The notes beneath the pieces were generated by a model. That model was given only the letters and a program-made list of their open reading frames with translations, did not search any database and had not been told where the DNA came from. Positions 1,181-17,385 of a stretch of 64,000 nucleotides of DNA are shown piece after piece. The translations under genes were made by a program, and so were the position numbers. The stretch spans positions 1 to 64,000 of the forward strand of contig NIVC01001366.1 in assembly GCA_002269645.1 (NCBI GenBank), in the 5' to 3' direction. This DNA comes from Macrostomum lignano. Lineage: Eukaryota. Positions within the stretch are counted from its first letter, which is position 1. Every line of letters starts with the position of its first letter.

Positions 1181-2090
1181 TTGTTGTTGTTGTTGTTGTT
1201 GTAGATGTCTAGCTGCTTTCCGGTGGTTTCCTCTTCCACCACTCCCACATCTTCAGCGCTTCCTCCGCCTTCATGCAAACCTCACTCAGAACTCCGCTCC
1301 TCCATCCCCTCCAGCAGCTGTCCAGAACCGGGCAGGCCACCATGTGCTCGATGGTCTCCTCCTCCATGCCACACTGCCTGCAATTTCCATCCTGCTGCAG
1401 CCCGATTCTCTTTCTAAACGCTGCCAGCTCCAGCGAGTGTCCCGTACGCCATCTTGTAAAACTAACCTCCTCCTTCCTGCTCGTGAACTCCGGATCTTTC
1501 CTTGGTCCCTCCGAGCCGCCGTACGTCGCCCTCATCCTCTCGTGCCTCCACACCTTCCTTCTACACCGCCTCCTCGCCATCCTCGCCATCGTGCTCGCCA
1601 TGACTCCAATTCCTTCATTGCTCACTTCCCTGACCGCCCGAATAGCCCATTCGTCCGCCACTTCGTTCCCTACGATCCCGCAGTGGCTCGGTATCCACAG
1701 CATCACCATCTCTCGCCCTTCCATCTCGCTCAGCGCTTTTCTAATGCTGCAGACGATCGGGTTCTTGCTGGTCTTTTTAATAGCTTTTGCTGTCTGTCGC
1801 AATCACAGCTTTGTGCCAGTTGTTGTTAATCGCCAGCCACCTGATTGCCGCCTTCAACGCGTAAAGCTCCGCCTGCATCGAGGACGCGAGCTGTCCGCCG
1901 GCCACCATTTGCCTTTCGACCACCGCGCCGTTATCGTACTTCCCCCTCCTTTGCCTCCCTTATCAACCGAAACATCCGTGAAGATCAATTTGTCCGCTCC
2001 GTCGCAAGCCGCTCTTATCCTGCTCTCTCCCATCCTCCTGCATTCCTGCTTCGTGTCTGGCCTTCCTCCCTCGTCATCGAATACTACGTG
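1150..2090 (-). mobile_element. 5'-truncated, frameshifted non-LTR retrotransposon (RNase H-bearing LINE, I/R1-like) with (CAA)n tail
   Basis: RNase H motifs IFTDVS, QAELYAL, IATDSKS and LWIPSHCGIVGNEVAD, then RWRTGH...CRQC..EETIEHMVAC (C-terminal Cys-His motif). Stop at 1209 followed by a (CAA)n(CAG)n tail. Confidence 0.85.
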
Positions 2091-2867
2091 AGAGACTTGA
2101 CAAAATTGACTAAACCTGACCGGCTTTCCTATTCTAACTGAGGGAGGGATGTTGTGTCTGAGACTAAAGTTATCTGTGGCCTTAGCTCGTGAAACATTCT
2201 AAATGTTATAAGAGTAATAATTAAAGCTCACGGCACAAAACGGGCTTCTTCAAGTTTATGTTGATAAAATACTTCCGATTTTCCAATTTTTCTGAAACTT
2301 GCGGTAGACACTTATGGGGCAACCAAAATTACAAAAACGCAACAAAAAGCGTAGAGAATTACCTGTACGGTTGATAGGATGATAATTTACTTAATTCCTA
2401 TTCTCTTAATGATGATCGGTGACAAAAAGTTTCTAGGAATACATATTCAAAAGTGTATCCACTAGACTTTTAAACCAGTAGCACATGTGCTAGAAGTTCA
2501 TTAGGCCAATGAAAATTGAATGTTACTATCTACAAATTTATACGCAATTGTCTGTTAAGTTCCCCAATAATAGTTTTTCAATTTAGTTTTAATGCATGTA
2601 CAATTTGCCACGTCACTGTTCGTTTTTTAAAAACTGCCACGTCACGACCCGCTCGATTTTTTGCACTTGCGCACTTTCACTTGCACCTAGCCAAAGCTAC
2701 CTTCCAACATTCGCACTTCGCACCTTTGCACCTGTCAACTCCCAGCCAGTAACCGTACAAGACTATATTACTCATTCTAGTGTATTAAGGCAGTAGCAGC
2801 ACTTGATTTCGGTAAGCAAATTCATTCGAGATTTAGTTATAGACTTCAACCAAGGTCTGATATAATT

Positions 2868-4046
2868 ATGTTGACTCTTTGGTGGATTCTCTCGTTTCTC
2901 GTGTCGTCTGATTCAGATGACTTGTTTGAGGAAGACGTCCAAGGGTTCGAGGAGCAATGGAACCAACTTATGGACAATCAAGCTGCTCGTGGTGCTGACC
3001 GAGAGGCTGTACCAGGGGGAGCTTGTGCGGCCAATAATGCGGACTCCAAAGCTTCTACGAAATCCAAAGATGTTGTCAAACAAGCTTCTGGTAAGCGTCG
3101 TGGGCGACCGGCAGCATCTACTAAAATGTTCAATGTAAATATTGAGGAAGCTCGGTATGTTCTAGATTATAATCCGACACACACCGCATTCATTACTCAA
3201 TTTCACGAAAGTGAGACTGAGGTTTTGCAATTCTTGGTTAGAATCGGACTAATCGCCAATACCATGTTGTGTTCGTCATGCTCGGGTCCAATGGGATTAG
3301 TCAAAAGATCAAGTGTGGCGGACAAATCAACATGGTATTGCAAGAGTTGCCGAACCAATACCTCAATTCGCACAAAATCGTTTTTTGAGCGGTCTCATCT
3401 TAGTTTGTTTCAGTGCCTTCATATCATCTTTTGGTGGGCTGCTGATATTGGTGACTTTGATTTTATTGCAGCAGAGACTAAGGTGTCCCAACAAACGCTA
3501 GTGGACTGGTTCAATTTCTGCCGTGAAATTTGTACCAAATATCTTGAAGACCATCCCTTCAAGTTAGGCGGTCCAAATAAAATAGTGGAAATTGACGAGT
3601 CCCTGTACTTCAAGCGTAAGTACAACAAAGGCCGTCAGCGTGAGCAGAAGTGGGTGTTTGGCATGGTTGAACGTGGTTCTACTCATATCTTTCTAATACC
3701 GGTAAAAGATTGTTCTGCAGCGACTCTTTTACCCATAATAGAAGAGCGAGTGGAGCCTGGCACAATCATTATGTCAGATGAATGGCAAGCTTATAATAGG
3801 TTGTCAAATCATCGGACTGTGAACCACTCACTTAACTTCGTCTCTCCTGCTGATCGTGATGTGCATACGCAATCAGTGGAATCCATGTGGTGTCACTGTA
3901 AAAAGAAGTACAAGCGTATGCATCGGACATCTGAGGAACTGTTTCAATCTTATCTGAATGAGTTCCAATTTCGACGGCTGCACAAAAAGAGTGTTATGGG
4001 GTCTCTTCTGTATTGGATTCGACACTACTATTCCTTCAAGGATTAG
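2868..4046 (+). CDS. Merlin/ISXO2-like DDE transposase, intact ORF (true start may be a downstream Met)
   Basis: Zn-ribbon CSSC...WYCKSC; DWFNFCRE; GPNKIVEIDES (D1); KRKYNKGR; WVFGMVERG; IMSDEW (D2); HRTVNHS; VHTQSVESMW (E); YLNEFQFRR. Confidence 0.93.
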   Translation: MLTLWWILSFLVSSDSDDLFEEDVQGFEEQWNQLMDNQAARGADREAVPGGACAANNADSKASTKSKDVVKQASGKRRGRPAASTKMFNVNIEEARYVLDYNPTHTAFITQFHESETEVLQFLVRIGLIANTMLCSSCSGPMGLVKRSSVADKSTWYCKSCRTNTSIRTKSFFERSHLSLFQCLHIIFWWAADIGDFDFIAAETKVSQQTLVDWFNFCREICTKYLEDHPFKLGGPNKIVEIDESLYFKRKYNKGRQREQKWVFGMVERGSTHIFLIPVKDCSAATLLPIIEERVEPGTIIMSDEWQAYNRLSNHRTVNHSLNFVSPADRDVHTQSVESMWCHCKKKYKRMHRTSEELFQSYLNEFQFRRLHKKSVMGSLLYWIRHYYSFKD

Positions 4047-4544
4047 TAACTTCTAATCCAATCCTGTCGTACTCAGCCTAGGTTCAGTTAGCAATCAGTT
4101 AATAATACTCAATGTAATATAAATTCAAAATTTGCGAAAGTTAAAAGACAACAGCACAGAAATAGAGGTTGAGGAAAAAATGTTCTGATTGATATCTGTT
4201 CGAATTCAGTTTGAAGAAATTCAAAAAGAAAAAATTAGTCTTCATCTTCTGCTGGTGATGTCAAAAATTCTTGATTTCGAGTGCTCGAGTCACCAGTGTA
4301 CGGAGTTCTAGGTGTAGAGCCTGTGGGTACCTGCTGATTCCAGCTGTTCTGCTGAGACATGTCACTCGTGTACAGACAGGCCTAGGTGTAGAGCCTGTGG
4401 GCATCTGCTGATTCCAGCTGTTCGAATCTCGTGAAAATGTTACCTGTGAAGTGGGATTCGGTTTGAAAAGTATATAATTATAACTGTCTTTGATTAAATT
4501 GAAGTGAACACTCATAAGAAGTATACAATAATAACTGCCTTTGA

Positions 4545-5858
4545 TTAAACTAAAGTGAACACACATTTTCGAAATAAACTAACCTCTTTGCTTCCGAAAC
4601 GCAGTCTTATTCTTCGCATGTTGTTAAACTGGTGAAACATTCGTTCGGGGTAGTGTAATGTCATTTCTTCATCATGTGATGCTTGCTGCTCAGGTGGTGG
4701 AATCTGTGTCGCTCGCACAGCCTCGAAATGCTGCTGGCTAGCTGTGGCGCCGTTGTACCACTCGGTTAGGTCGGAGAACTCTTGCGAATTTTCTGGCCAG
4801 TGATGTACTTCTGCTTGCGAACAGCCGAGGCTTATCATCTGGGCGTACTCTTGGACTTGAGAGCCATGAATCGCGAGAATGTCGCCGATAGACCAATTAT
4901 TCACCTGCGCAGAAGAACTGGCCCAAAAAGTGCAGGACACAGAGGACCCGGACCGATCAACGATGGTAACTTTTGCTAAATCGACGAGCTTTCCGGCACC
5001 AGTTTTTACTTCCTTTGGCTTCTCAACTGCAGAAATGATGCCACGAACGTCAACTTTCCTGTCGTACGGTGAAAGTTTTTGAGTAGGGCAAATTTAGCTG
5101 AATGACTAGCAATCAGCGCCCCCGTTGGGCAGCCAAAAAATGCATTACAAGTTTTTTAATAAACTACATGTAGCGTCTCTTTGCAATACCTCAGCAGTCC
5201 CTTGTAAGCCTTGGCATGTTAGCAATTCCCCCCACAAGCCTTAGCATATCAATTTCCCCCCTTGACATCTCATCGATGCCCCCCTCCCCATTAAGCCTTG
5301 AAATCTTAAAAAATCGGTCAAGCTTTTAACCCTAACCTCAGCCTAACTCTAACCGTAACCCTAAAGTAAAGCAAAGCACGAGGAAATGTATAAAAGAAAA
5401 TAAAGGCACAAAGTGCAAGATATTTACGTTTTCATTTGGCATGCAGAAATTTCCGATATCCTCCTGTAGTCCCGGGGACGCCTGTTGACCGTCTCGTTTG
5501 AAGTCATGATGGTGCCGCTTTTGTCAACTGAGACGCTCATCTCATACTCGTTTTCCGTAGTGTTGTACCTTGGGTCAGCCTTTTTGATCCAGCCTCCAGA
5601 AATGCGCACTGTCTCGACCGTTTGGCACATTTCCAGCAATGACTTCAGGTCCTTGCCAAAAACGCTCACTCTGATGTCTGCAGTCTCGTCAGTCAAAGTG
5701 AAGGAGAACACTTGGCCTGATCCAGCTTTGTTGTTCTCGTAGGCGTGGATTTTTGTCAGTCTCGTTATCAGACCAACGACCGGTGAATCCATCAAGCCGG
5801 GCAGAAGAGCAGAGATGCCGAATTTGACCTTCTGGGCTGGCGTAGGGTTTGATTCCAT
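4545..5858 (-). CDS. RPA70-like ssDNA-binding protein (OB folds A and B only), 2 exons 5858-5428 and 5058-4545, about 314 aa; transposon cargo
   Basis: Exon 1 has GSGQVFSFTLTDETADIRVSVF...ADPRY...EYEM (DBD-A-like). A phase-2 intron (AC|GTAAAT...GACAG|G) joins in frame to KVDVRGIISAVE...IVDRSGSSVSCTFW...ILAIHGSQVQEY...DLTEWY (DBD-B-like). A possible extra donor GAG|GTTAGT near 4583 could lead to a third exon around 4440-4230. Confidence 0.82.
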
Positions 5859-6787
5859 TTCTCTTCGTTACTTAAAGAATCTAAGTTAAAAGTAGATAAA
5901 AGTGATGCTTGACTTGAAACAGTTGAGGCGAAAAGTTTACTGCATTTACAGTTTGTTTTTATTATATATTGCAGCCCTGCAGCCACCCCTTCGTCCCAAA
6001 ACAACTCTCAATATTTTCTCGCTGCCGTCTGATTGGTCAGCATCTCGACTTTCTGTTATAGCCTTTTTCTTACCGTCCACTCTATTCTATTTTTTAGTCA
6101 CCCCTGTTTGTAAATTTTAGCCACCTTTATAATTTTGGTGGCCTCTGATTGGTCCGCTGGTTTAGGCTGGGGTCGATTGGGGGCTGCAGTCAGCGCCAAC
6201 CCCTCCGCTGGGTCGAACTGGATCGCTGAGACTTTTTTCATGCAATTACTTTATTTGGGCTGTTTACGCGTGCCGCGGAAAGTTATTGATTTTTTGGACT
6301 ACAAGAACAAATACTAACAGATATAATATCAAATTATATAATAATAACTTTTGTTATTTTTTACAAAACAAAACTGAAACTTACACTTAAACTTAAAAGT
6401 GCATTTTGTAGCTAAATTTTCACGACAGAGGTAGAGAGACACCAGATAAAATCAATAATGAGGTGATTAAGTATGATGTCTCACCCTCATTGTCCACTGA
6501 AAACAAAATATAGGCTTATTAGGCTGGGCTGGGGAGTTAGGTGATTGGTTAGAAATAACTCAGGAATCAAAAGCCGACAGGGTGAGCCAATCATTGCTAG
6601 AGATAACAAGAGATTTGGGGGTGAAAAAACAGCAAATTTGGGGTGGTGGAGCAGGCAGCCATTATCTGGTTTTGGCCACTGTACACTATAGTATATATAA
6701 CCAACTCTGTTCTTAACAATTTCACTATACGCCCGAACAAAATAAAAAATAAGTTTAAAAGCCCACGCCAGTCTTTTTTCCAGTACT
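5859..6787. promoter_or_regulatory. Divergent promoter region between the two cargo genes
   Basis: ATTGG at 6032 and 6148, CCAAT at 6587, and TATATATAA at 6692-6700, about 90 bp upstream of ATG 6788. Confidence 0.5.
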
Positions 6788-7380
6788 ATGAATCCGTACC
6801 TAAGTAATCCCTACCTAAGTTATCCCAATCCCTATCCGTATCCCTATCCCTATCCCTATCCCTATCCATTTCCTGGTGTATTTTATCCCCCCCATCTACT
6901 GGGATGCCCTATCCCAACCCATACCCACCCCCTATTCTCCCACCGGCACCCTGGCCGATGCAGCAACAGCAGCAACAGCAAGAGGAGCAGCAACAACAAC
7001 AGCAACAACAACAACTGCAACAACAACAACAGCAACAACAACAACCGCAACAGCAACAGCAACAGCATCAACTGCAGCTACACTCGCGCTCAGCGCGAAC
7101 TCGATTTGTGAGAGACGAAATGCGCGCACGTAAGTTAATTGTATTACGAGTTTGTTTAGAGGGGTAGTTTTGACTAAATCAGTTTTCGTTTGACCACTCA
7201 TTTCGTGTGAAGTGAATATACGTCAAAACTAATATTGACAAATCTAATCGCTTTCTTTTCACAGTTGGACTCTGCAGATTCTGCCTGCGGCGCGGCCACA
7301 TTGCGGCAGAGTGCAGAGACCTACCTCGCCGCCGCAGCCGCAGCCGCAGCCGCAGCCGCAGCACTGTCGTTGAAGAATGA
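6788..7380 (+). CDS. Tyr/Pro-rich + polyQ + CCHC zinc-knuckle + RS-repeat protein, 2 exons (6788-7129, 7265-7380); about 152 aa with one G restored at 6901-6903, or 113 aa from ATG 6904; transposon cargo
   Basis: Donor C|GTAAGT at 7130, branch-like CTAAT near 7244, acceptor TTTCTTTTCACAG at 7264. The spliced product ends EMRALGLCRFCLRRGHIAAECRDLPRRRSRSRSRSRSTVVEE*, containing a CX2CX4HX4C knuckle. Confidence 0.75.
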
Positions 7381-7659
7381 ATCATTTTTTTAATTTCTGT
7401 GCTGTTAACTATTTGACTATTTGTATTTTGACTATTTATAACTATTTTTGCTGTTAACTAGGTTAAGTATTTGATTAAGTAAAAAATGGATTAAAAAATA
7501 AATAAAAATTTGATTAAGTGATTAAGTAAGTTAAACTACGACTAAAATGCTGAGTTAGGAGCACCTTAGGAGCACTTTACCAATTTAAGTAAAGTAAAGC
7601 TCTTTGTCTTATGATAAATCCGTTTTAATAATGAGTCTTTTGGTTTTTTTGGTTCTTCA

Positions 7660-7785
7660 AACAAAAGGAGCCACAATGTCATACATTAAAGAGGCACCAT
7701 GTAAAACATAAAAGAGCCGCCATGTCAAACACTAAAGAGCCACCATGTCGTACATAAAACAGCCACCGCGTCAAACATAAACATG
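7660..7785. repeat. Degenerate ~25-bp tandem repeat, about 5 copies
   Basis: Units of the form aaagagccaccatgtc..acat. Confidence 0.6.
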
Positions 7786-9197
7786 TCAAAACAGATAATT
7801 AAATGTAATAAATCACCAAAATAATTAAATGTATATAAATTGTGCAATGGGCTATCTTGTTGGTAAGCCTTTTGCAAGAAAATCATACAAGGCATGTGTG
7901 CAAAGAAATATTGTGCTAAATATTCGGAGTTGTCTTGTTGGTGAATGTAATTTAACGAAATTCACTCTTCATTTCGGCCTTCGTTCACAAGAATTCTATT
8001 TATTTATTGGCCAAAACTATACATTTACTATAATAATATATAAAAAACTGCCGAAATTTACTTTTTGTTTCTCATGCATTTTTTGTGTTAATAGTTTATT
8101 CTGATTCGGACACTACTAATAAGTAATAACTTTGGAAGTCACTTTTATTGGTATTCGCAGGAATGGACTGCGATAGCTTAATTATCGCATAAAGACTTTA
8201 AATTTTGGTGTATGTATTTTTTATGGAAAATATAATCTATAAGTAGAATAATCAATGAAATAAGGGCAGAGAAAATGGACGAATTCAACATTTTGGTGGT
8301 ACTGTTTAACAATGTATTAGTAAAGCAGCATAGTTGATATGAGTATGTATTCAATAAAGTCAAATTGAGCTGTTGAATGGATAATATTCCCATAAAAATA
8401 CACCAATTAATATTCTTTTGCTGCTGCACATTTTTGAAATTATAAAACCAATAAAAGATAACAGTCAACAGTGAGAAATAATCGAGGCCCTTTTAAGTCC
8501 TTCATTACTGATATAAGTTTTCGTACGATTTGCAGTCACCACTGAATTTAGCTACTAGGCTTATCCATTATTAACTTGACTTAAAATGGAGATTTGATAT
8601 GTAAAGTGAAAGACACTTTGAAGATTTTTATGTATATGTATTAAATCAAGATTCAAGAAGCAACATCTATTTGTTCTTGCCATTGTAACTTTTCATAAAA
8701 TCTGTTTTAAGGACCACTGCAGTACAAATATTGTTCGTTTTAGTACGCGTCATGCAGTTTATTCTGTATGTATGGTCATAGTAGGGCATTATTATAAAAA
8801 CAACAATTTTCGGCTCAAATTAATTTCAGTGCGAGTTGTCATCAACCAATGTGTATGTAAAAAAATGACTAATCTCTAGGTTACTGTTTAAAAATGCCTT
8901 AACTTATCATTTTTATTTCTTCACAGATAAACCTTACTTTCTGTGTGGCAAGTCTATTTATCTTTGTTTAAATACTAATACTGCATTCTTACGGATGTTA
9001 CATTGCTTTGTACAAATGTGCATGAAATGCGTAATTTTTATGCTATATAATTCTAATAAAAATCACAAAGAGATAATAGCAACCAAGAATCGCAGAGATA
9101 ATAGCAATACTTTTGTGAGTACAAACATATTTAATATGTAACAATAGAAAAATTTAGGAAAACCGTTTCAATTTGTCCCTTGCTTATTCGGCTTATT

Positions 9198-9312
9198 CTT
9201 GCTATCTGGGGGATGCTTGCTATCTGGGGGATGCTTGCTATCTGGGGGATGCTTGCTATTCGGGGGATGCTTGCAATCTGGGGGATGCTTGCTATGTGGG
9301 GGATGCTTGCTG
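9198..9312. repeat. 18-bp minisatellite CTTGCTATCTGGGGGATG, about 6 copies
   Basis: Direct reading of the sequence. Confidence 0.9.
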
Positions 9313-9687
9313 TCTTGCGATGATTTCTTTTTGCATTGCACTTCATTTGAGTATTTTGTCTGTTTTCTTTGTGAAGGCTTTATTTCGCTATCTTTTTGTT
9401 ACTTGTAGAGAACAGAGATTCTATACAGATGTCCCCCAACGGGGGGCGAAGATTGCTAGTTTGCCTCTGAAATTGAGTGTTGCTGTTGCCAAAATATGTT
9501 ACTATAAATTGTATCTTAGAGTATAAGTTATCTATATACTAAGCTATTTATTGAACCCCGGTGTCCGTTTGTCTAATTTGTCAATTGAGGATCAACATAT
9601 AAGATGCATTTAATAAAGGTGAGTGTTTCATTTAAGTCTTTTTCTTATATGCTATTTGTTGTAATACGGCGGAATTCATCAACACAT

Positions 9688-10290
9688 TTTTGAGTAGGTC
9701 TCCATGCCCTCTATTCAAGTTTATGTTGATAAAATCAATCCCCATGAAGAATCTCCCCACTCTAAAACCCCCCATTCCCCATGCCCCGGTGGTCGGTTTT
9801 GAGCTACGACCCCCCCCCCCTATTAGGATGGGAATAAATCAACACAATCTTGAATAGGTCTCCATGCCTCTATTCAAGTTTATGTTGATAAAATCAATCC
9901 CCATGAAGAATCTCCCCACTCTAAAACCCCCCATTCCCCATGCCCCGGTGGTCGGTTTTGAGCTACGACCCCCCCCCCCCCTATTAGGATGGGAATAAAT
10001 CAACACAATCTTGAATAGGTCTCCATGCCTCTATTCAAGTTTATGTTGATAAAATCAATCCCCATGAAGAATCTCCCCACTCTAAAACCCCCCATTCCCC
10101 ATGCCCCGGTGGTCGGTTTTAAGCTACGACCCCCCCCCCCCCCTATTAGGATGGGAATAAATCAACACAATCTTGAATAGGTCTCCATGCCTCTATTCAA
10201 GTTTATGTTGATAAAATCAATCCCCATGAAGAATCTCCCCACCCTAAAACCCCCCATTCCCCATGCCCCGGTGGTTGGTTTTAAGCTACA
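9688..10290. repeat. ~160-bp subterminal tandem array (about 3.7 copies) inside the Merlin element; each unit carries the TIR core
   Basis: Units start near 9690, 9851, 10012 and 10175, and each contains TTCAAGTTTATGTTGATAAAAT. Confidence 0.9.
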
Positions 10291-12044
10291 TATAATTGGG
10301 TTAAAGCTACCAAAAAATGGATCTCAAATTTGAAATCAGCACCATCAAAAACCCTTATAGAGACAAATTTATGATCCTATCAAAATTGCAACTATTTTAT
10401 CAACATAAACTTGAAGAAGTCCCACAAAACTTCTCAAGCGTAGTTTTGGGCCACTTGCCATCAAGTAAAACATTTGATTTCTAACCTTATGTTTGAGATC
10501 TCGGAGACTCAACAAACAGTAAATAGAGAGCATTAGACTGCTGCTGCTGCTGCTACAGCAAATTTAAATTGAAAAAGCAAGAAGTCGAAATAAAGAATGA
10601 CATGACAGATAGGCTGTCACGATGACAGAGTTCTCTTAATCTATATTGCTTTTATATAACATAGAACAAAAACTGTAAAGCATTGCCATCTAAACTGTAC
10701 GTCAAGTCTCTACTTTAAAGCTATGCTATGCAATAAAATAGGTCCCTATGGAATCTCTTTGCGAACAAATATTCCATATAGCTCCTATTAGGCATAGCAG
10801 AATCTGTCAGAAGTTGAACTTACCCAGTCAGGTCCTTTGCTAAAAAAAAACAAAGCCTCAGATTTGCTCGCTGCTCGCTCGCCTCTGCTGAATACAAGCT
10901 GGGGAAAGGCGCTCAGAATGAACTGCACTGCAACTGAGCCCACAGATCATAGGCTAAACTGGGGAGATTGCGAAAGCTGCTAAAATCAAAATTCTCAATA
11001 CAGGGCGCTAAAATCATAGTCTATGGCCGAGCTTCGCAACTAACCGAATTGAGCTAAGCAAATGATTAAGCGATAGGCTGTGTAAAGCGGTCAGTGTAGA
11101 GAAATAAGGTGGGGCGCCGGGCCCAAATTGGTATTTATGACATTGAATTGGAGGGGAGGGTTGAGTCCATGAGGCAGCGTTTGAGCCTGCCGCTGTACTT
11201 GCGCTAAATGACTAATTAAATGACTATTATTGAGTTATTGATTGCGTACATCTAGTGTGCACACCACCCCATTTAGTCCACGTGCGCCCCGCCACCGCCC
11301 CGCCAATAATTATTTTTTGTATCGATTTTGTTAGCATCGTTTATGACTAATAATATATCGAAACAGAGACATCGTTTATTTTACCAAATCATCGTGCTTA
11401 CTTAGTTGAACTCCTAAACAACGCGACAGTCCTAATAATAAACGGAGGGGTGGAATGCGCGGCTAAGGAAAGAGGCGAGATTGAGGAGCCAATCAGAAGG
11501 CAGCTAGGGAGAAAAAGATAAGAATAACAAGATTGAATTGGACAGAGAGGTCCAGAGAGAACGGGTCCATGAGAATTGGCCGCAGACAGGACGAACTGGC
11601 CGCCCAGATTTGCCGCAGTGCATTGTGCCCGTAAGCGAAAAGTTTTTCTCGCTGATGAATATTCTATAATATATCGTTAAAATACACTCAGCAACTTTGA
11701 AAAAGTCGACAATTCTATGCGCCAGTGAGCAATTTCTCTTGGACTTGGACTTTTATTCTGAAATAAAAGACATGAGAAAAGTGATCGGGGTAGCTTTAAT
11801 CCGCCCAACCCTCTCACATCGCTGCTCCACTTCATTCCTCAACTCAAGTCTGCCGCGGCGTAGCTGAGTTGCGACACTCGCAAAGATTGAGAGACTTTAC
11901 CTGCACTCTCAAAAGTGGCGACCACAGACGGAATCTTATGTGATTGCGACTTTTCGATGTTGCTGAGTGATATTTCCCGTAATGCTTAGCAAGTCCTAAT
12001 AAAGAGATTTAAAGAGATTTACCAGATCCAACAGCTGGCAACAG

Positions 12045-13777: not shown

Positions 13778-14734
13778 ATGGCTGAGCTTGCATATTTTGC
13801 ATCGCGAATTTTCAGGACGTCAACATCTAATGGATGCAGTTATGAGCTGCACTGTCTTATCGAGGAGACGAATCACCTGGCCACACAAATGGAAGAAATA
13901 AGACTGACTGATGAGCCGAAGTCAGAGAAACTGAGACGGGCACTGCAGAGCGTATGCGATATTGGATACGAGCTCATGTCGTGGTGTCGGTACTCGGAAG
14001 TAAAAGAATTGTTCAACCATTTTCAACGACTGTTTCCCGTCTCTAGCGAGTTTACTCGTGAAGCAAAGAGAGAGTTTTGTGAAAAGGTGCAGCAATCAAT
14101 TCGGAGTCTCAGAGACTCGCGTGAAGCTCTTGGAAGATTCAACGACGGACTGAATGACTCGCATCGGCTCGCAAAGAAGCTCTGTGAGAGGCTCACACAG
14201 AAGGCGGAGGAGCTCAAGCGGCAAAAGCACCAGACGAGAATCCGAGGGGCGGCAGGAGCAGCCGGTCTGGCTGTTGGAGGAGCCGGGCTCGCGGCCGTCA
14301 GTTTATTTACTGGAGGAGCTGCCCTGGTGGCCGCTGCAGCCGCAGCTGCCGCCGCTACCGCTGGAGCCACCTCTAGTGTCGCTGCCGGTGCCGTTGCTGC
14401 AACCACTGTCGCTAACGCAAAAACAAAACAACGGCAGGTTGAGAACATGCGAAATTGCTCAATGAAACTAGCTGTTATAGCAAGGAATATTGAGAGCATT
14501 CTCGACAAGGCCGGACGCATCCGACTAGACGAGGACATCGAGGCGCTGCAGACACTGTTGGAGCTGCTCAGCAGGGATGAAAGCCCGGACGAAGGCGGTG
14601 GCGAAGCAAGTGGAGCTGGATTTCTACTTCTGGGCCAGGACGGCCGCATCGCTCGGCAGCAGGAGCAGCGCGATGCAATGGATGCAGAGATTGCTGAGTT
14701 GGAGGCCAAGATGAGGATGTACGGCATCAAATAG
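13778..14734 (+). CDS. Coiled-coil protein with central Gly/Ala hydrophobic hairpin (ApoL/ClyA-like architecture), paralogue 1, 318 aa
   Basis: Intact intronless ORF. Helical N-half, then RGAAGAAGLAVGGAGLAAVSLFTGGAALVAAAA, then a C-terminal coil ending AEIAELEAKMRMYGIK. Confidence 0.75.
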   Translation: MAELAYFASRIFRTSTSNGCSYELHCLIEETNHLATQMEEIRLTDEPKSEKLRRALQSVCDIGYELMSWCRYSEVKELFNHFQRLFPVSSEFTREAKREFCEKVQQSIRSLRDSREALGRFNDGLNDSHRLAKKLCERLTQKAEELKRQKHQTRIRGAAGAAGLAVGGAGLAAVSLFTGGAALVAAAAAAAAATAGATSSVAAGAVAATTVANAKTKQRQVENMRNCSMKLAVIARNIESILDKAGRIRLDEDIEALQTLLELLSRDESPDEGGGEASGAGFLLLGQDGRIARQQEQRDAMDAEIAELEAKMRMYGIK

Positions 14735-15445: not shown

Positions 15446-16359
15446 GGGTTCGGTTGGACACAGTAGGAATTTTGTGTGACAATTGGGAACATTTAATCGC
15501 ACTTTAATTTTCTTTGATTTGTCTGCTTGGTAGAAATGACTGTTTGGAAGCAGCAAGTAAAAGTCATATGTTTGAATATTTACAGACAAGAAGTGAAAAT
15601 TCTACCTGAAAGTAATTCATTGATAGATTAAGCAAGTGGCATGCAAAAGTATTAGGCTTCAATATTTTCGAACAAAGTTGACCCCACTTTTTATCGATTG
15701 CTTCGGGAATAATATAGATAGAACTTTTGGGATTTCGGTGAAAGAGAGAATTTTTTTACCTAAAAACCTCATGACTAATCAACTGTTGAGGTCGGCCAGA
15801 GCTCTGACGATTCCAGTCTCTTTTTTGTTGTCTTCGCACCCAGAAAGCCTTCATTTTACCCAATAAAGTCCTTACTGATCGTAGTTTTTCAAAAGCAAGT
15901 CTGAATGTGGCACTGCGATGCAAAATGCTGAGACGTCAGCGTTCAGTATGATGATTCTTAATGACTCAGCACAAGTCGGAAAAATGCACCAAGCTATCAG
16001 TGTACCTGGCCGCTGCTCCAGGTGGTTCAGATTTGAGCAGAAAAATGATGAGTTCGGTTTTGACAATTCTGAGACTCTCGGGGATAGCATACGAGTAGGC
16101 AGCACTGCATTTCTGCAGTTTCAATGGCAAACGGAGGGCAAATAGGGGCCAATGGTCATCGCATTGTACTTAGGCTGCAAACGGCTTATCATTGGCGAAT
16201 TCTCTGCCTCACACTCAAACCATCACTGTACATCTGTGCGAATGGTCACATCAGCCTGCGCTTTGAACAACAATGCTCAGATGAGTATAATTACATTGGA
16301 ATTCAAATCTTATACTGAAATAACTGAACCAAATAGATCGAAACCAACAACCCTTGAAA

Positions 16360-17385
16360 ATGGTAGAACGGCTGGGTGAGGTCGGTCAAGGCCTGAAAGA
16401 CATCGGCGATGCCGTCAAATTGATAAAGCAGATCCAAAAGAAAGAATCGTTGCTGATCGAATTTACCGAAGAAATAAAAAACCAAGCCAGCAAATTGGTG
16501 AAAATCAGCCTCCCAGATCATCCGCGGCTAAAGCGTCTTGAGCCTCAGCTACAACATCTAAGGGAAAATTTTATTTTTTTAATTAATTCCGAAGGTGACC
16601 TGGAGAACTGGCTCGAAGCTTTTTTCAAAAAGCTTACCAGATGTAACGAATTTATAAATTCCCAAATTCAGAACGGCAGCATCCCCCCTGAAGCAACTAA
16701 AGAAATCTATAAAGCGCTAATGTATCTGAACAACATGGTAAATGACTTCTTCAAATATTTTGAGAAATTCATCACCAATTTGAACGAATCGCAGCATATT
16801 GCGGAGGAGCTCAAGTGCCAGCTAGAAGAGACGGCAAAAGAGATTGAGGAGGAAGCGACAGAGGCAGAACAGGCCGAACTGAAACGACAAGCTGAGATAA
16901 AGCAGCAAACCGAAATGGGACGTCAAGCTGAAGTGAAGCAAAAAAGGTGGACCATTGGCAGTACCTTGGGTCTGCTTGTTGGAGGCGCCAGTCTCGCGGC
17001 TCTCGGCTTCTTCACAGGCGGGGCTGCCTTCGCTGCTGCAGGCGCAATCGTGGGAGCCGTCGGTTACTCCTACTACCCCTCTAACGACTCTAATGACTCG
17101 CAGGTCGGAGCAGACTCGAGGTCTATACAGTCTGACTTAGGCGCGATGCGACACCTAGCTGAGAATATCAAGGCCACGTCTAACCAGCTGGGCGTCATCG
17201 CGACGAGACTGAAGTACAGCTGCAACGAGGCCAGCAAAATTCATCTGAGCGAAACAGACAAAGAAGCACTGCAGACCGCATTGGAATTCCTTCAAAAAGA
17301 CCAGGCGAAGGACGACCGCATCAATCAACAGCAGGCAGAGATTAATGAGTTAAAGGCCAAGATGAGGAGGCATGGCATCGAATAG
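16360..17385 (+). CDS. Coiled-coil/hydrophobic-hairpin protein, paralogue 2 (about 341 aa from ATG 16360)
   Basis: GSTLGLLVGGASLAALGFFTGGAAFAAAG hairpin. C-terminus AEINELKAKMRRHGIE matches paralogue 1. Confidence 0.75.
   Translation: MVERLGEVGQGLKDIGDAVKLIKQIQKKESLLIEFTEEIKNQASKLVKISLPDHPRLKRLEPQLQHLRENFIFLINSEGDLENWLEAFFKKLTRCNEFINSQIQNGSIPPEATKEIYKALMYLNNMVNDFFKYFEKFITNLNESQHIAEELKCQLEETAKEIEEEATEAEQAELKRQAEIKQQTEMGRQAEVKQKRWTIGSTLGLLVGGASLAALGFFTGGAAFAAAGAIVGAVGYSYYPSNDSNDSQVGADSRSIQSDLGAMRHLAENIKATSNQLGVIATRLKYSCNEASKIHLSETDKEALQTALEFLQKDQAKDDRINQQQAEINELKAKMRRHGIE

Follow-up and report, generated by a model that had tools for sequence, protein, structure and literature searches.

The window analysed, 64,000 nucleotides of the Macrostomum lignano contig NIVC01001366.1, includes a genuine member of the Merlin superfamily, with both ends intact, a TSD and a transposase gene that appears intact; between its termini lies a block with two further genes, one related to RPA70 and one encoding a putative CCHC zinc knuckle (Table 1).

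Table 1. Features of the Merlin element and of its inner block, with positions in the window
Feature	Position	Strand	Remarks
Left TSD	2234-2241	none	CACAAAAC; directly abuts the left TIR; read from the sequence
Merlin left TIR (TIR-L)	2242-2282	+	Starts with GG; repeat search
Merlin transposase ORF	2868-4046	+	392 aa, uninterrupted; Pfam DDE_Tnp_IS1595 (PF12762)
5'-truncated Helitron fragment, probably nested	4121-9459	+	5.34 kb; contains both "cargo" genes; blastn against L008-L011
Helitron RPA70-like gene	4235-5858	-	Exons 5858-5428, 5058-4584 and 4443-~4235; GT-AG junctions
Helitron CCHC zinc-knuckle gene	6788-7380	+	Exon 1 6788 or 6904-7129, exon 2 7265-7380
Helitron 3' terminus	9433-9459	+	Hairpin CCCCC-AAC-GGGGG(G), 9-nt spacer, CTAG; T at 9460
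Merlin 3' subterminal region	9460-10381	+	Includes 161-bp tandem repeat, ~3.8 copies, 9651-10293
Merlin right TIR (TIR-R)	10382-10422	-	Repeat search
Right TSD	10423-10430	none	CACAAAAC; directly abuts the right TIR; identical to the left TSD

Structure of the Merlin element

Both Merlin termini open with GG, as read directly from the sequence (left GGGCTTCTTCAAG..., right, in reverse complement, GGACTTCTTCAAG...), and agree at 29/30 of their first 30 nucleotides, the terminal letters being GGGCTTC... and GGACTTC..., respectively; a repeat search extends the pair to a 41-nt inverted repeat with 90% complementarity. The octamer that flanks the element is perfectly duplicated, and an 8/8 match at such fixed positions is expected by chance with a probability of ~1.5e-5. 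A 22-mer core of the TIR occurs six times in the window, against none expected from shuffled sequences, and 6/6 occurrences lie within the element, the terminal GGGCTTC/GGACTTC being present in the two outermost copies only. In the subterminal tandem array (TRF period 161, 97% matches), every 161-bp unit holds one exact 22-nt core in the orientation of the left TIR, without the terminal GGGCTTC. These copies are probably transposase-binding sites.

The predicted transposase combines an N-terminal Cys4 zinc finger with a DDE_Tnp_IS1595 domain (PF12762; E = 4.1e-25, 89 bits against a cut-off of 27 bits). Its 312 homologues are all metazoan Merlin-type proteins that contain PF12762, and the window ORF spans them end to end in the alignment, C-termini included. 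Invariant columns of the alignment hold the catalytic residues D243, D304 and E338 as well as C135, C158 and C161, and C138 is nearly invariant. Since the closest transposases found are just 42-47% identical, the Merlin of the window represents a distinct family, which appears to be intact and is possibly active. In sea slug, octopus and further ENA assemblies, no RPA-like or CCHC gene was found within 10 kb of related Merlin loci.

When the inner block is subtracted, the element (2242-4120 plus 9460-10422) measures 2,841 bp and is a typical single-gene Merlin; no ORF with a domain match other than the transposase was found in these two segments, and the transposase is therefore the only gene of its own. 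The GG-initiated ends, the perfect 8-bp duplication and the uninterrupted ISXO2-type DDE frame that the first-pass annotation had described were all recovered at the positions it gave, and two spliced genes do lie between the termini.

The inner block at other loci

A blastn comparison with four other loci of the M. lignano assembly GCA_002269645.1 (L008-L011) aligned exactly the span of the inner block, at 96.2-98.9% identity. At these loci, which represent at least three independent insertions (two of the Helitron-bearing contigs have one flank in common), the block is the 3' portion of an autonomous Helitron family of ~13-14 kb, in which a Rep/Pif1-helicase gene is followed downstream by the RPA-like and CCHC genes. 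A Helitron_like_N gene is found 5-6 kb past the RPA-like gene at each of the four, and the ORFs of L009 match STPRs, Helitron_like_N (6e-46), PIF1 (1e-19) and Pif1_2B (1e-16)/UvrD_C. Comparison of both DNA and protein revealed no Merlin TIR, Merlin DNA or Merlin transposase at L008-L011, and the Merlin 3' subterminal region was not found there either. Only nine substitutions separate the window block from L011, a divergence of 0.13-0.19%, and the RPA- and CCHC-encoding Helitron family is very young.

The window fragment contains no Rep/Hel gene and is consequently non-autonomous. Moreover, the homology shared by L008-L011 does not stop at the equivalent of window 4121 but runs on toward the Rep/Pif1 gene, from which it follows that the window copy is truncated at its 5' end. 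The insertion point lies 74 bp past the stop codon of the Merlin transposase.

Genes of the Helitron fragment

The three-exon model of the RPA-like gene is confirmed by an annotated 370-aa protein (P0121), which is 99% identical to it over residues 1-302; the model matches PAA48194.1 of M. lignano at 99% identity, and the cluster of RPA-like proteins comprises at least six members from different contigs. The gene encodes two OB folds (DBD-A and DBD-B) and a conserved C-terminal region, with matches to PDB entry 1jmc (RPA70 DBD-A/B; E = 1.2e-14, residues 15-219) and to the Pfam families REPA_OB_2 (3.8e-12) and tRNA_anti-codon OB fold (2e-10). Of the residues that align with human F238, W361 and F386, the first two are conserved and the third is replaced by tyrosine. 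Neither the N-terminal DBD-F nor the DBD-C zinc finger was found in the 370-aa protein, the C-terminal region of which is short and unrelated; because it has two OB domains only and the full RPA70 architecture is absent, it is RPA-like and not an orthologue of cellular RPA1. The OB-fold protein presumably binds ssDNA, in the service of the single-stranded rolling-circle intermediate. In the window copy a private 2-nt GT insertion at ~4376-4377 shifts the frame of the last ~45 codons. A more diverged RPA-like gene at another M. lignano locus (L012) directly follows a Pif1-helicase fragment, which is 65% identical to the Helitron helicase of L009.

The CCHC protein displays a Pro/Tyr-rich stretch, polyQ, a knuckle motif that reads CRFCLRRGHIAAEC (C-X2-C-X4-H-X4-C) and an RS repeat. 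It matches Pfam zf-CCHC only weakly, with 15.1 bits where the cut-off is 20.8 bits, and the motif is kept in all four copies aligned, with synonymous changes only inside it. The same alignment shows C7/C8/C9 length variation and in-frame indels, and in the window copy the first ATG is out of frame owing to the C7 run at ~6887-6893.

Junctions between the block and the Merlin

Canonical Helitrons end at the 3' side in CTRR, with a hairpin ~10-12 nt upstream and a T directly after the junction (PMC5148889, PMC4778049). The 3' end of the block fits this published terminus, with a hairpin, CCCCCAACGGGGG(G), followed by 9 nt and by CTAG at 9456-9459, and the same end is found in L008, L010 and L011. 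The window and these three loci, which retain that end, all finish in ...CCCCCAACGGGGGGCGAAGATTGCTAG followed directly by T, and then split into three different flanks.

At the 5' junction, the candidate A may be any of 4121-4123; the copy is truncated, so that the canonical A/TC junction is not readable. The homology among L008-L010 begins ~250-320 bp before the start codon of Rep, and no clean A/TC boundary was found in these loci, which provide just two independent flanks for comparison. The letters AAAT/AAATTC are common to the Merlin flank and to Helitron positions 4121-4126, a possible microhomology of 4-6 nt. Transposition of Helraiser needs the left terminal sequence (PMC4778049). A simple canonical Helitron insertion fails to explain the 5' junction, because the fragment is without this essential end, and aberrant initiation, later deletion or repair-mediated capture must therefore be invoked.

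Comparison with known elements

The Merlin superfamily is the eukaryotic counterpart of the related bacterial IS1595/IS1016 elements (Feschotte, 2004, as summarised in PMC8101967), and the window element shares with it an IS1595 DDE transposase with an N-terminal zinc finger, GG TIRs, an 8-bp TSD and, after removal of the block, a single transposase gene in ~2.8 kb. A Merlin family of Symbiodinium has tandem repeats near one end (PMC8101967), as does the element described here. On the other hand, an array of 161 bp x 3.8 with an exact 22-nt TIR core in each unit, as well as the interruption by a Helitron fragment, sets it apart from known Merlins.

In HLE1 Helitrons, RPA genes lie downstream of RepHel and STPR domains have been reported (PMC11417382). 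The full-length relatives of the window fragment resemble those of plants, cnidarians and fish in combining STPR, Helitron_like_N and Pif1 with a downstream RPA-like gene, and the short GC hairpin, CTAG and T at the 3' end are like those of Helraiser/Helibat. They differ from known HLE1 Helitrons in their flatworm host, in an RPA-like gene that is antisense to RepHel and encodes DBD-A/B with a novel conserved C-terminal region and no DBD-C zinc finger, and in an extra spliced CCHC/RS gene, while the window copy departs from the full-length elements in being without RepHel and the 5' terminus. It is similar to Mothra as a Helitron-derived unit that has lost the Rep/helicase gene and retains the 3' end together with the RPA-like gene; however, the mother element of Mothra has kept the two Helitron ends and can be mobilised in trans, whereas the window fragment has no recognizable 5' terminus and lies inside a transposon. 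The presence of foreign coding DNA between TIRs, with one TSD around the whole, also recalls Pack-MULE-type capture and nested insertions, although the insert is a discrete mobile-element piece with its own terminus, in contrast to the host gene fragments of Pack-MULEs.

Origin of the composite

Since the block matches Helitron copies and has a Helitron 3' terminus, and its removal leaves a typical Merlin, the locus is best read, with a probability of roughly 0.85, as a 2,841-bp Merlin with a nested, 5'-truncated Helitron fragment, and not as a gene module that evolved within a Merlin. An autonomous Merlin would have inserted by cut-and-paste at an CACAAAAC target in M. lignano, duplicating the 8 bp, and, before or after that step, a truncated piece of a young Helitron of the canonical HLE1 type would have entered it just past the transposase gene, bringing its own accessory genes, RPA70-like and CCHC/RS, and leaving out Rep/helicase and the 5' end. 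The piece may have arrived by Helitron integration or by an aberrant integration into the Merlin.

Some TIR elements gain filler DNA by repair-associated template switching, and the Helitron DNA might have been picked up in the same way while a double-strand break or gap was being repaired, through a template switch once the Merlin had excised or broken. The absent 5' end, which transposition would have needed, and the possible microhomology at the 5' junction are in keeping with such a capture, which we nevertheless consider unlikely: the 3' junction falls exactly at CTAG followed by T, as in independent genomic insertions, and random template switching would need to land there by chance.

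It is quite unlikely that the Helitron piece entered a Merlin earlier and that the composite then moved to this site, and possibly elsewhere, as a functional element with its passengers. A single perfect TSD does bracket all 8.2 kb, the TIRs and transposase are intact, the insertion falls outside the transposase ORF and both inner genes are mostly still readable; yet the inner block has a Helitron terminus of its own and is linked to Rep/Hel, not to Merlin, at 4/4 other loci, a second composite copy was not seen among these four Helitron loci sampled, the frameshift in the RPA-like gene is private to the window, and nine substitutions in 5.3 kb relative to the genomic Helitron copy L011 mean that the composite can hardly have existed for long. 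A chance pairing of the ends of two independent Merlins or of two MITEs, or a misassembly of unrelated pieces, could draw on the local repetition of Merlin-end sequences in the TIR-core array at the right end, on the presence of the Helitron on several contigs, two with the same flank, and on homopolymer lengths that differ between copies, but is very improbable in view of the perfect 8-bp TSD exactly outside both GG termini, the terminal heptamers confined to the two outermost core copies and an inner junction that falls right on a Helitron terminus, a position that makes biological sense.

The first-pass annotation had interpreted the locus as a giant cargo-carrying Merlin of 8.2 kb with a gene module of its own, to be sought with its TIRs at other loci, and had named cargo genes without TIR linkage elsewhere as the outcome that would speak against it. 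This is what was found: the genes are present at four other loci at 96-99% identity, with a Merlin TIR in 0/4, and both belong to a Helitron 3' part that is linked to Rep/Hel at those loci. A real Merlin with two inner genes is retained from that reading; the giant element is rejected in favour of an ordinary 2.8-kb Merlin plus a 5.3-kb Helitron piece, the "passengers" being Helitron genes.

Implications

The nested reading resolves an apparent multi-gene Merlin into two known kinds of transposon, one inside the other, and removes a false lead. It also bears on PAA48194.1 and the other M. lignano proteins of its cluster, which are annotated as "Replication factor A protein 1" or "Replication protein A OB domain-containing protein"; their genes are Helitron-borne, not cellular RPA1, and are therefore unfit to be treated as host replication genes. 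For a flatworm that serves as a model of regeneration, the window further documents this Merlin family and a very young RPA/CCHC Helitron family. It is decidedly unlikely, though conceivable with an intact transposase and TIRs, that the Merlin/Helitron chimera is itself mobile and can move the largely intact Helitron accessory genes. If it is, these genes, one for an RPA-like SSB and one for a CCHC protein, would gain a cut-and-paste means of spread without Rep/Hel, or a Merlin lineage would gain an ssDNA-binding partner, and a truly multi-gene Merlin would have its beginning here.

The Merlin transposon and its surroundings

On sequence grounds the element is a Merlin by the published definition, which comprises TIRs with a terminal 5'-GG, an 8-9-bp target-site duplication (TSD) and a DDE_Tnp_IS1595 domain (PMC8101967), and its transposase is apparently intact; each Merlin feature that was looked for was found. 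As the first-pass annotation had described, the outer 30 nt of the TIRs are identical at 29 positions and carry GG at both termini (the left TIR reads GGGCTTCTTCAAG... and the reverse complement of the right end GGACTTCTTCAAG...), and the perfect 8-bp TSD CACAAAAC abuts both termini. The ISXO2-type DDE ORF that it had called uninterrupted is indeed open over 392 codons and matches Pfam DDE_Tnp_IS1595 with E = 4e-25 (see the table for coordinates). A database search returned 312 transposase homologues, all with PF12762, the best being 42-47% identical and the named ones coming from molluscs, arthropods, cnidarians and other animals; no exact-sequence record for the transposase exists in the database. 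In an alignment with ten homologues, Cys135, Cys138, Cys158 and Cys161 and the catalytic residues Asp243, Asp304 and Glu338 are invariant or nearly so, and the ORF extends to the C-termini of the homologues. The element moved into CACAAAAC by DDE cut-and-paste.

Main features of the window
Feature	Position	Strand	Description
ORF left of Merlin	1209-1802	-	weak RNase H and zf-RVT matches
TSD copies	2234-2241 and 10423-10430		8 bp
TIR pair	2242-2282 and 10382-10422		41-nt inverted repeat, 90% complementary
Transposase ORF	2868-4046	+	
RPA-like gene	exons 5858-5428, 5058-4584, 4443-~4235	-	modelled, GT-AG junctions
CCHC gene	exons 6788/6904-7129, 7265-7380	+	Pro/Tyr-rich and polyQ region, one knuckle, RS repeat
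Tandem array	9651-10293		161-bp units, ~3.8 copies, 97% identical, just inside right Merlin TIR
Intronless ORF	13778-14734	+	318 aa
Intronless ORF	16354-17385	+	343 aa
Propionyl-CoA carboxylase alpha	34.6-38.9 kb	-	host gene
ANCHR/FYVE protein	40.2-41.4 kb	-	host gene
Alpha-mannosidase II	45.3-48.4 kb	-	host gene
THOC3	51.5-52.3 kb	-	host gene

Without the inner block that holds the other two genes, the Merlin element measures 2,841 bp and consists of a TIR, a leader of ~600 bp, the transposase gene, 74 bp, and ~960 bp that include the tandem array and the right TIR. Every unit of the array contains an exact 22-nt TIR core in the orientation of the left TIR, without the terminal GGGCTTC, and at a distance of 12 nt each core is paired with an imperfect inverted copy of 20 nt. 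The window contains six copies of the core, all inside the element, against none in 100 shuffles; the core was found in none of the 11 other loci searched (L001-L011). This search and the exact look-ups of the transposase and of the ORF at 13778-14734 yielded neither a further copy of the Merlin nor an empty site. We infer that the array cores are putative additional transposase-binding sites, and the 161-bp array as a whole may represent either subterminal transposase-binding sites or a MITE-like array.

The ORF ~430 bp to the left of the element, in which zf-RVT denotes a reverse-transcriptase zinc-binding domain, is probably a non-LTR retrotransposon remnant, and the surroundings of the Merlin may therefore be regarded as transposon-rich DNA. 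The two intronless ORFs to the right are paralogous: in each, a hydrophobic segment rich in Gly and Ala separates coiled-coil-like halves, and their C-termini resemble one another (...AKMRMYGIK and ...AKMRRHGIE); neither belongs to a Pfam family, and no homologue of the first was found in the database by word-indexed protein search or exact look-up. Many long GC-rich minisatellite arrays, open in several frames, lie between and within host-gene exons (15.1-15.6, 25.9-26.9, 28.3-28.9, 36.9-37.9, 42.4-43.3, 44.5-45.0, 60.9-62.2 and 63.2-64.0 kb). An Rfam search of the window gave no match.

The RPA-like and CCHC genes

The two spliced genes reported inside the Merlin boundaries, one RPA-like and one encoding a candidate CCHC zinc knuckle, are both real. 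An exhaustive HMMER search with the model of exons 1 and 2 of the RPA-like gene retrieved the 370-residue M. lignano protein P0121 (PAA48194.1), which is 99% identical to the model over residues 1-302 and runs on into the modelled third exon, thereby confirming the splicing; a word-indexed protein search with exon 1 gave no match. The protein contains two OB folds, matches DBD-A/B of human RPA70 (PDB entry 1jmc; E = 1.2e-14) and the Pfam families REPA_OB_2 and tRNA_anti-codon, but, in contrast to cellular RPA70, lacks the remaining RPA70 architecture. The 90% cluster of P0121 has at least six members on separate contigs, all from M. lignano (P0121 and P0271-P0275, corresponding to PAA48194.1, PAA84280.1, PAA80343.1, PAA49042.1, A0A1I8J998 and A0A1I8G617), publicly named 'Replication factor A protein 1' or 'Replication protein A OB domain-containing protein'. 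M. lignano and read assemblies also have more diverged paralogues (34-66% identity). In the trematode Calicophoron daubneyi, 26 separate stretches of a 4022-residue protein (P0122, CAL8082275.1) match the RPA-like query. Either this protein consists of a very long series of RPA-type OB folds, or its gene model has run together several tandem Helitron RPA genes.

The knuckle of the CCHC protein reads CRFCLRRGHIAAEC, with sub-threshold Pfam support. A poly-C run in this gene has seven residues in the window (6887-6893), eight in L008 and L010 and nine in L011, three of the other M. lignano loci that carry both genes; the first ATG is in frame only with eight and is out of frame in the window copy. 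A private 2-nt GT insertion in the window copy (~4376) shifts the frame in the tail of the RPA-like protein, and single-base gaps are present in RPA exon 2 of L010 and L011. Either of the window indels could be a long-read homopolymer error, and the poly-C variation and the exon 2 gaps look like such error mixed with real variation. Purifying selection was sought among the near-identical copies and rejected as a conclusion, the divergence of coding (0.83%) and non-coding (1.2%) DNA being too close and the substitutions too few. Evidence pointing to functional genes comes from the intact paralogues at 34-66% identity and the synonymous-only changes within the knuckle.

The inner block and its relatives

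Four loci of cluster members were compared with the window (L008-L011, all from GCA_002269645.1). By blastn, window 4121-9460, which holds both genes, is 96.2-98.9% identical to these loci, as one continuous segment in L008, L010 and L011 and as an interrupted match ending at window 8329 in L009. The Merlin parts on either side (2242-4120 and 9461-10422) matched none of the four, at the DNA level or in a tblastn search using the transposase. All four loci have a Helitron_like_N gene at a distance of 5-6 kb past the RPA-like gene. Outside the block, the ORFs of L009 encode STPRs, Helitron_like_N (6e-46), PIF1 (1e-19) and Pif1_2B/UvrD_C, and its Rep/helicase gene lies on the strand terminating at the far boundary of the block. 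The window, L008, L010 and L011 have the same 3' boundary, ...TGTCCCCCAACGGGGGGCGAAGATTGCTAG followed by T, and beyond it lie three different flanks, one in the window, one common to L008 and L010, and one in L011. At the 3' end of canonical Helitrons, a short GC hairpin precedes the terminal CTAG by about a dozen bases, and T comes next (PMC5148889; PMC4778049 for Helraiser), and HLE1 Helitrons have an RPA gene downstream of RepHel, with STPR domains also reported (PMC11417382). A Helitron 3' end and an RPA-like gene were both found in the block, and Rep/Hel in its relatives. In L012, another M. lignano locus, a diverged RPA-like gene directly follows a fragment of a Pif1 helicase with 65% identity to the Helitron helicase of L009.

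Beyond the equivalent of window 4121 the other loci share a ~90-bp duplicated unit and continue to the helicase, whereas the window sequence abruptly becomes Merlin DNA at this position; the copy in the window, 5.34 kb long and devoid of Rep/Hel, is therefore a Helitron fragment truncated at its 5' end. In the 74 bp that separate the transposase stop codon from 4121, a short-word search for a Helitron 5' terminus gave only noise. For the full-length Helitron, whose STPR coding repeats vary and for which just two independent flanks were available, no clean 5'-TC boundary was found. The window copy differs from L011 by nine substitutions (0.13-0.19%) and from L008 by ~1%, which indicates a recent event. 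L008 has a second Helitron Rep segment further upstream (1-2441, ~82-89% identical to L011 17768-20095), so related Helitron subfamilies cluster within one region.

Origin and significance of the probable nested arrangement

The first-pass annotation had proposed a single 8.2-kb Merlin carrying the two genes as passengers. This did not hold: at none of the four other loci bearing these genes are they tied to the same TIRs. Nor did tblastn with both proteins detect an RPA-like or CCHC gene in seven loci around related Merlin transposases outside M. lignano (L001-L007, from sea slug, octopus and ENA contigs). No TIRs were recognisable around the sea-slug (L001) and octopus (L002) Merlin copies, probably because these copies are old. 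One of the ENA contigs (L007, ERZ26859052, 5408 bp) has a Merlin transposase 46% identical to that of the window (2027-2626) and, ~700 bp away, an ORF with a Pif1_2B helicase domain (3338-4210), and may be another Merlin adjoining a Helitron remnant. Given the missing linkage between genes and TIRs and the presence of both Merlin and Helitron hallmarks, we conclude, with a probability of roughly 0.85, that the finding is a nested transposon, bringing new family members of two known kinds rather than a new kind of Merlin. That the Merlin/Helitron chimera is mobile as a unit is very improbable.

Two accounts of how the Helitron piece came to lie in the Merlin can be argued for. Helitron-mediated joining of a 5'-truncated copy is favoured by the precise Helitron 3' end with T directly after it. 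The missing 5' end of the window copy and possible microhomology of 4-6 nt at 4121-4126 speak for aberrant initiation, a deletion at a later time or copying during repair as the source of the truncated insertion; in Helraiser the left terminal sequence is essential (PMC4778049). Because the Helitron piece sits in non-coding Merlin DNA, it leaves the transposase ORF and the two TIRs undisturbed.

Judging from domain homology, the Helitron genes would be accessory factors of a rolling-circle element, the RPA-like product being a predicted ssDNA-binding protein for the single-stranded intermediate and the CCHC product a predicted nucleic-acid-binding knuckle protein of the Helitron. The M. lignano entries of the P0121 cluster, whichever of the two public names they bear, are to be read as Helitron genes and not as cellular RPA1.
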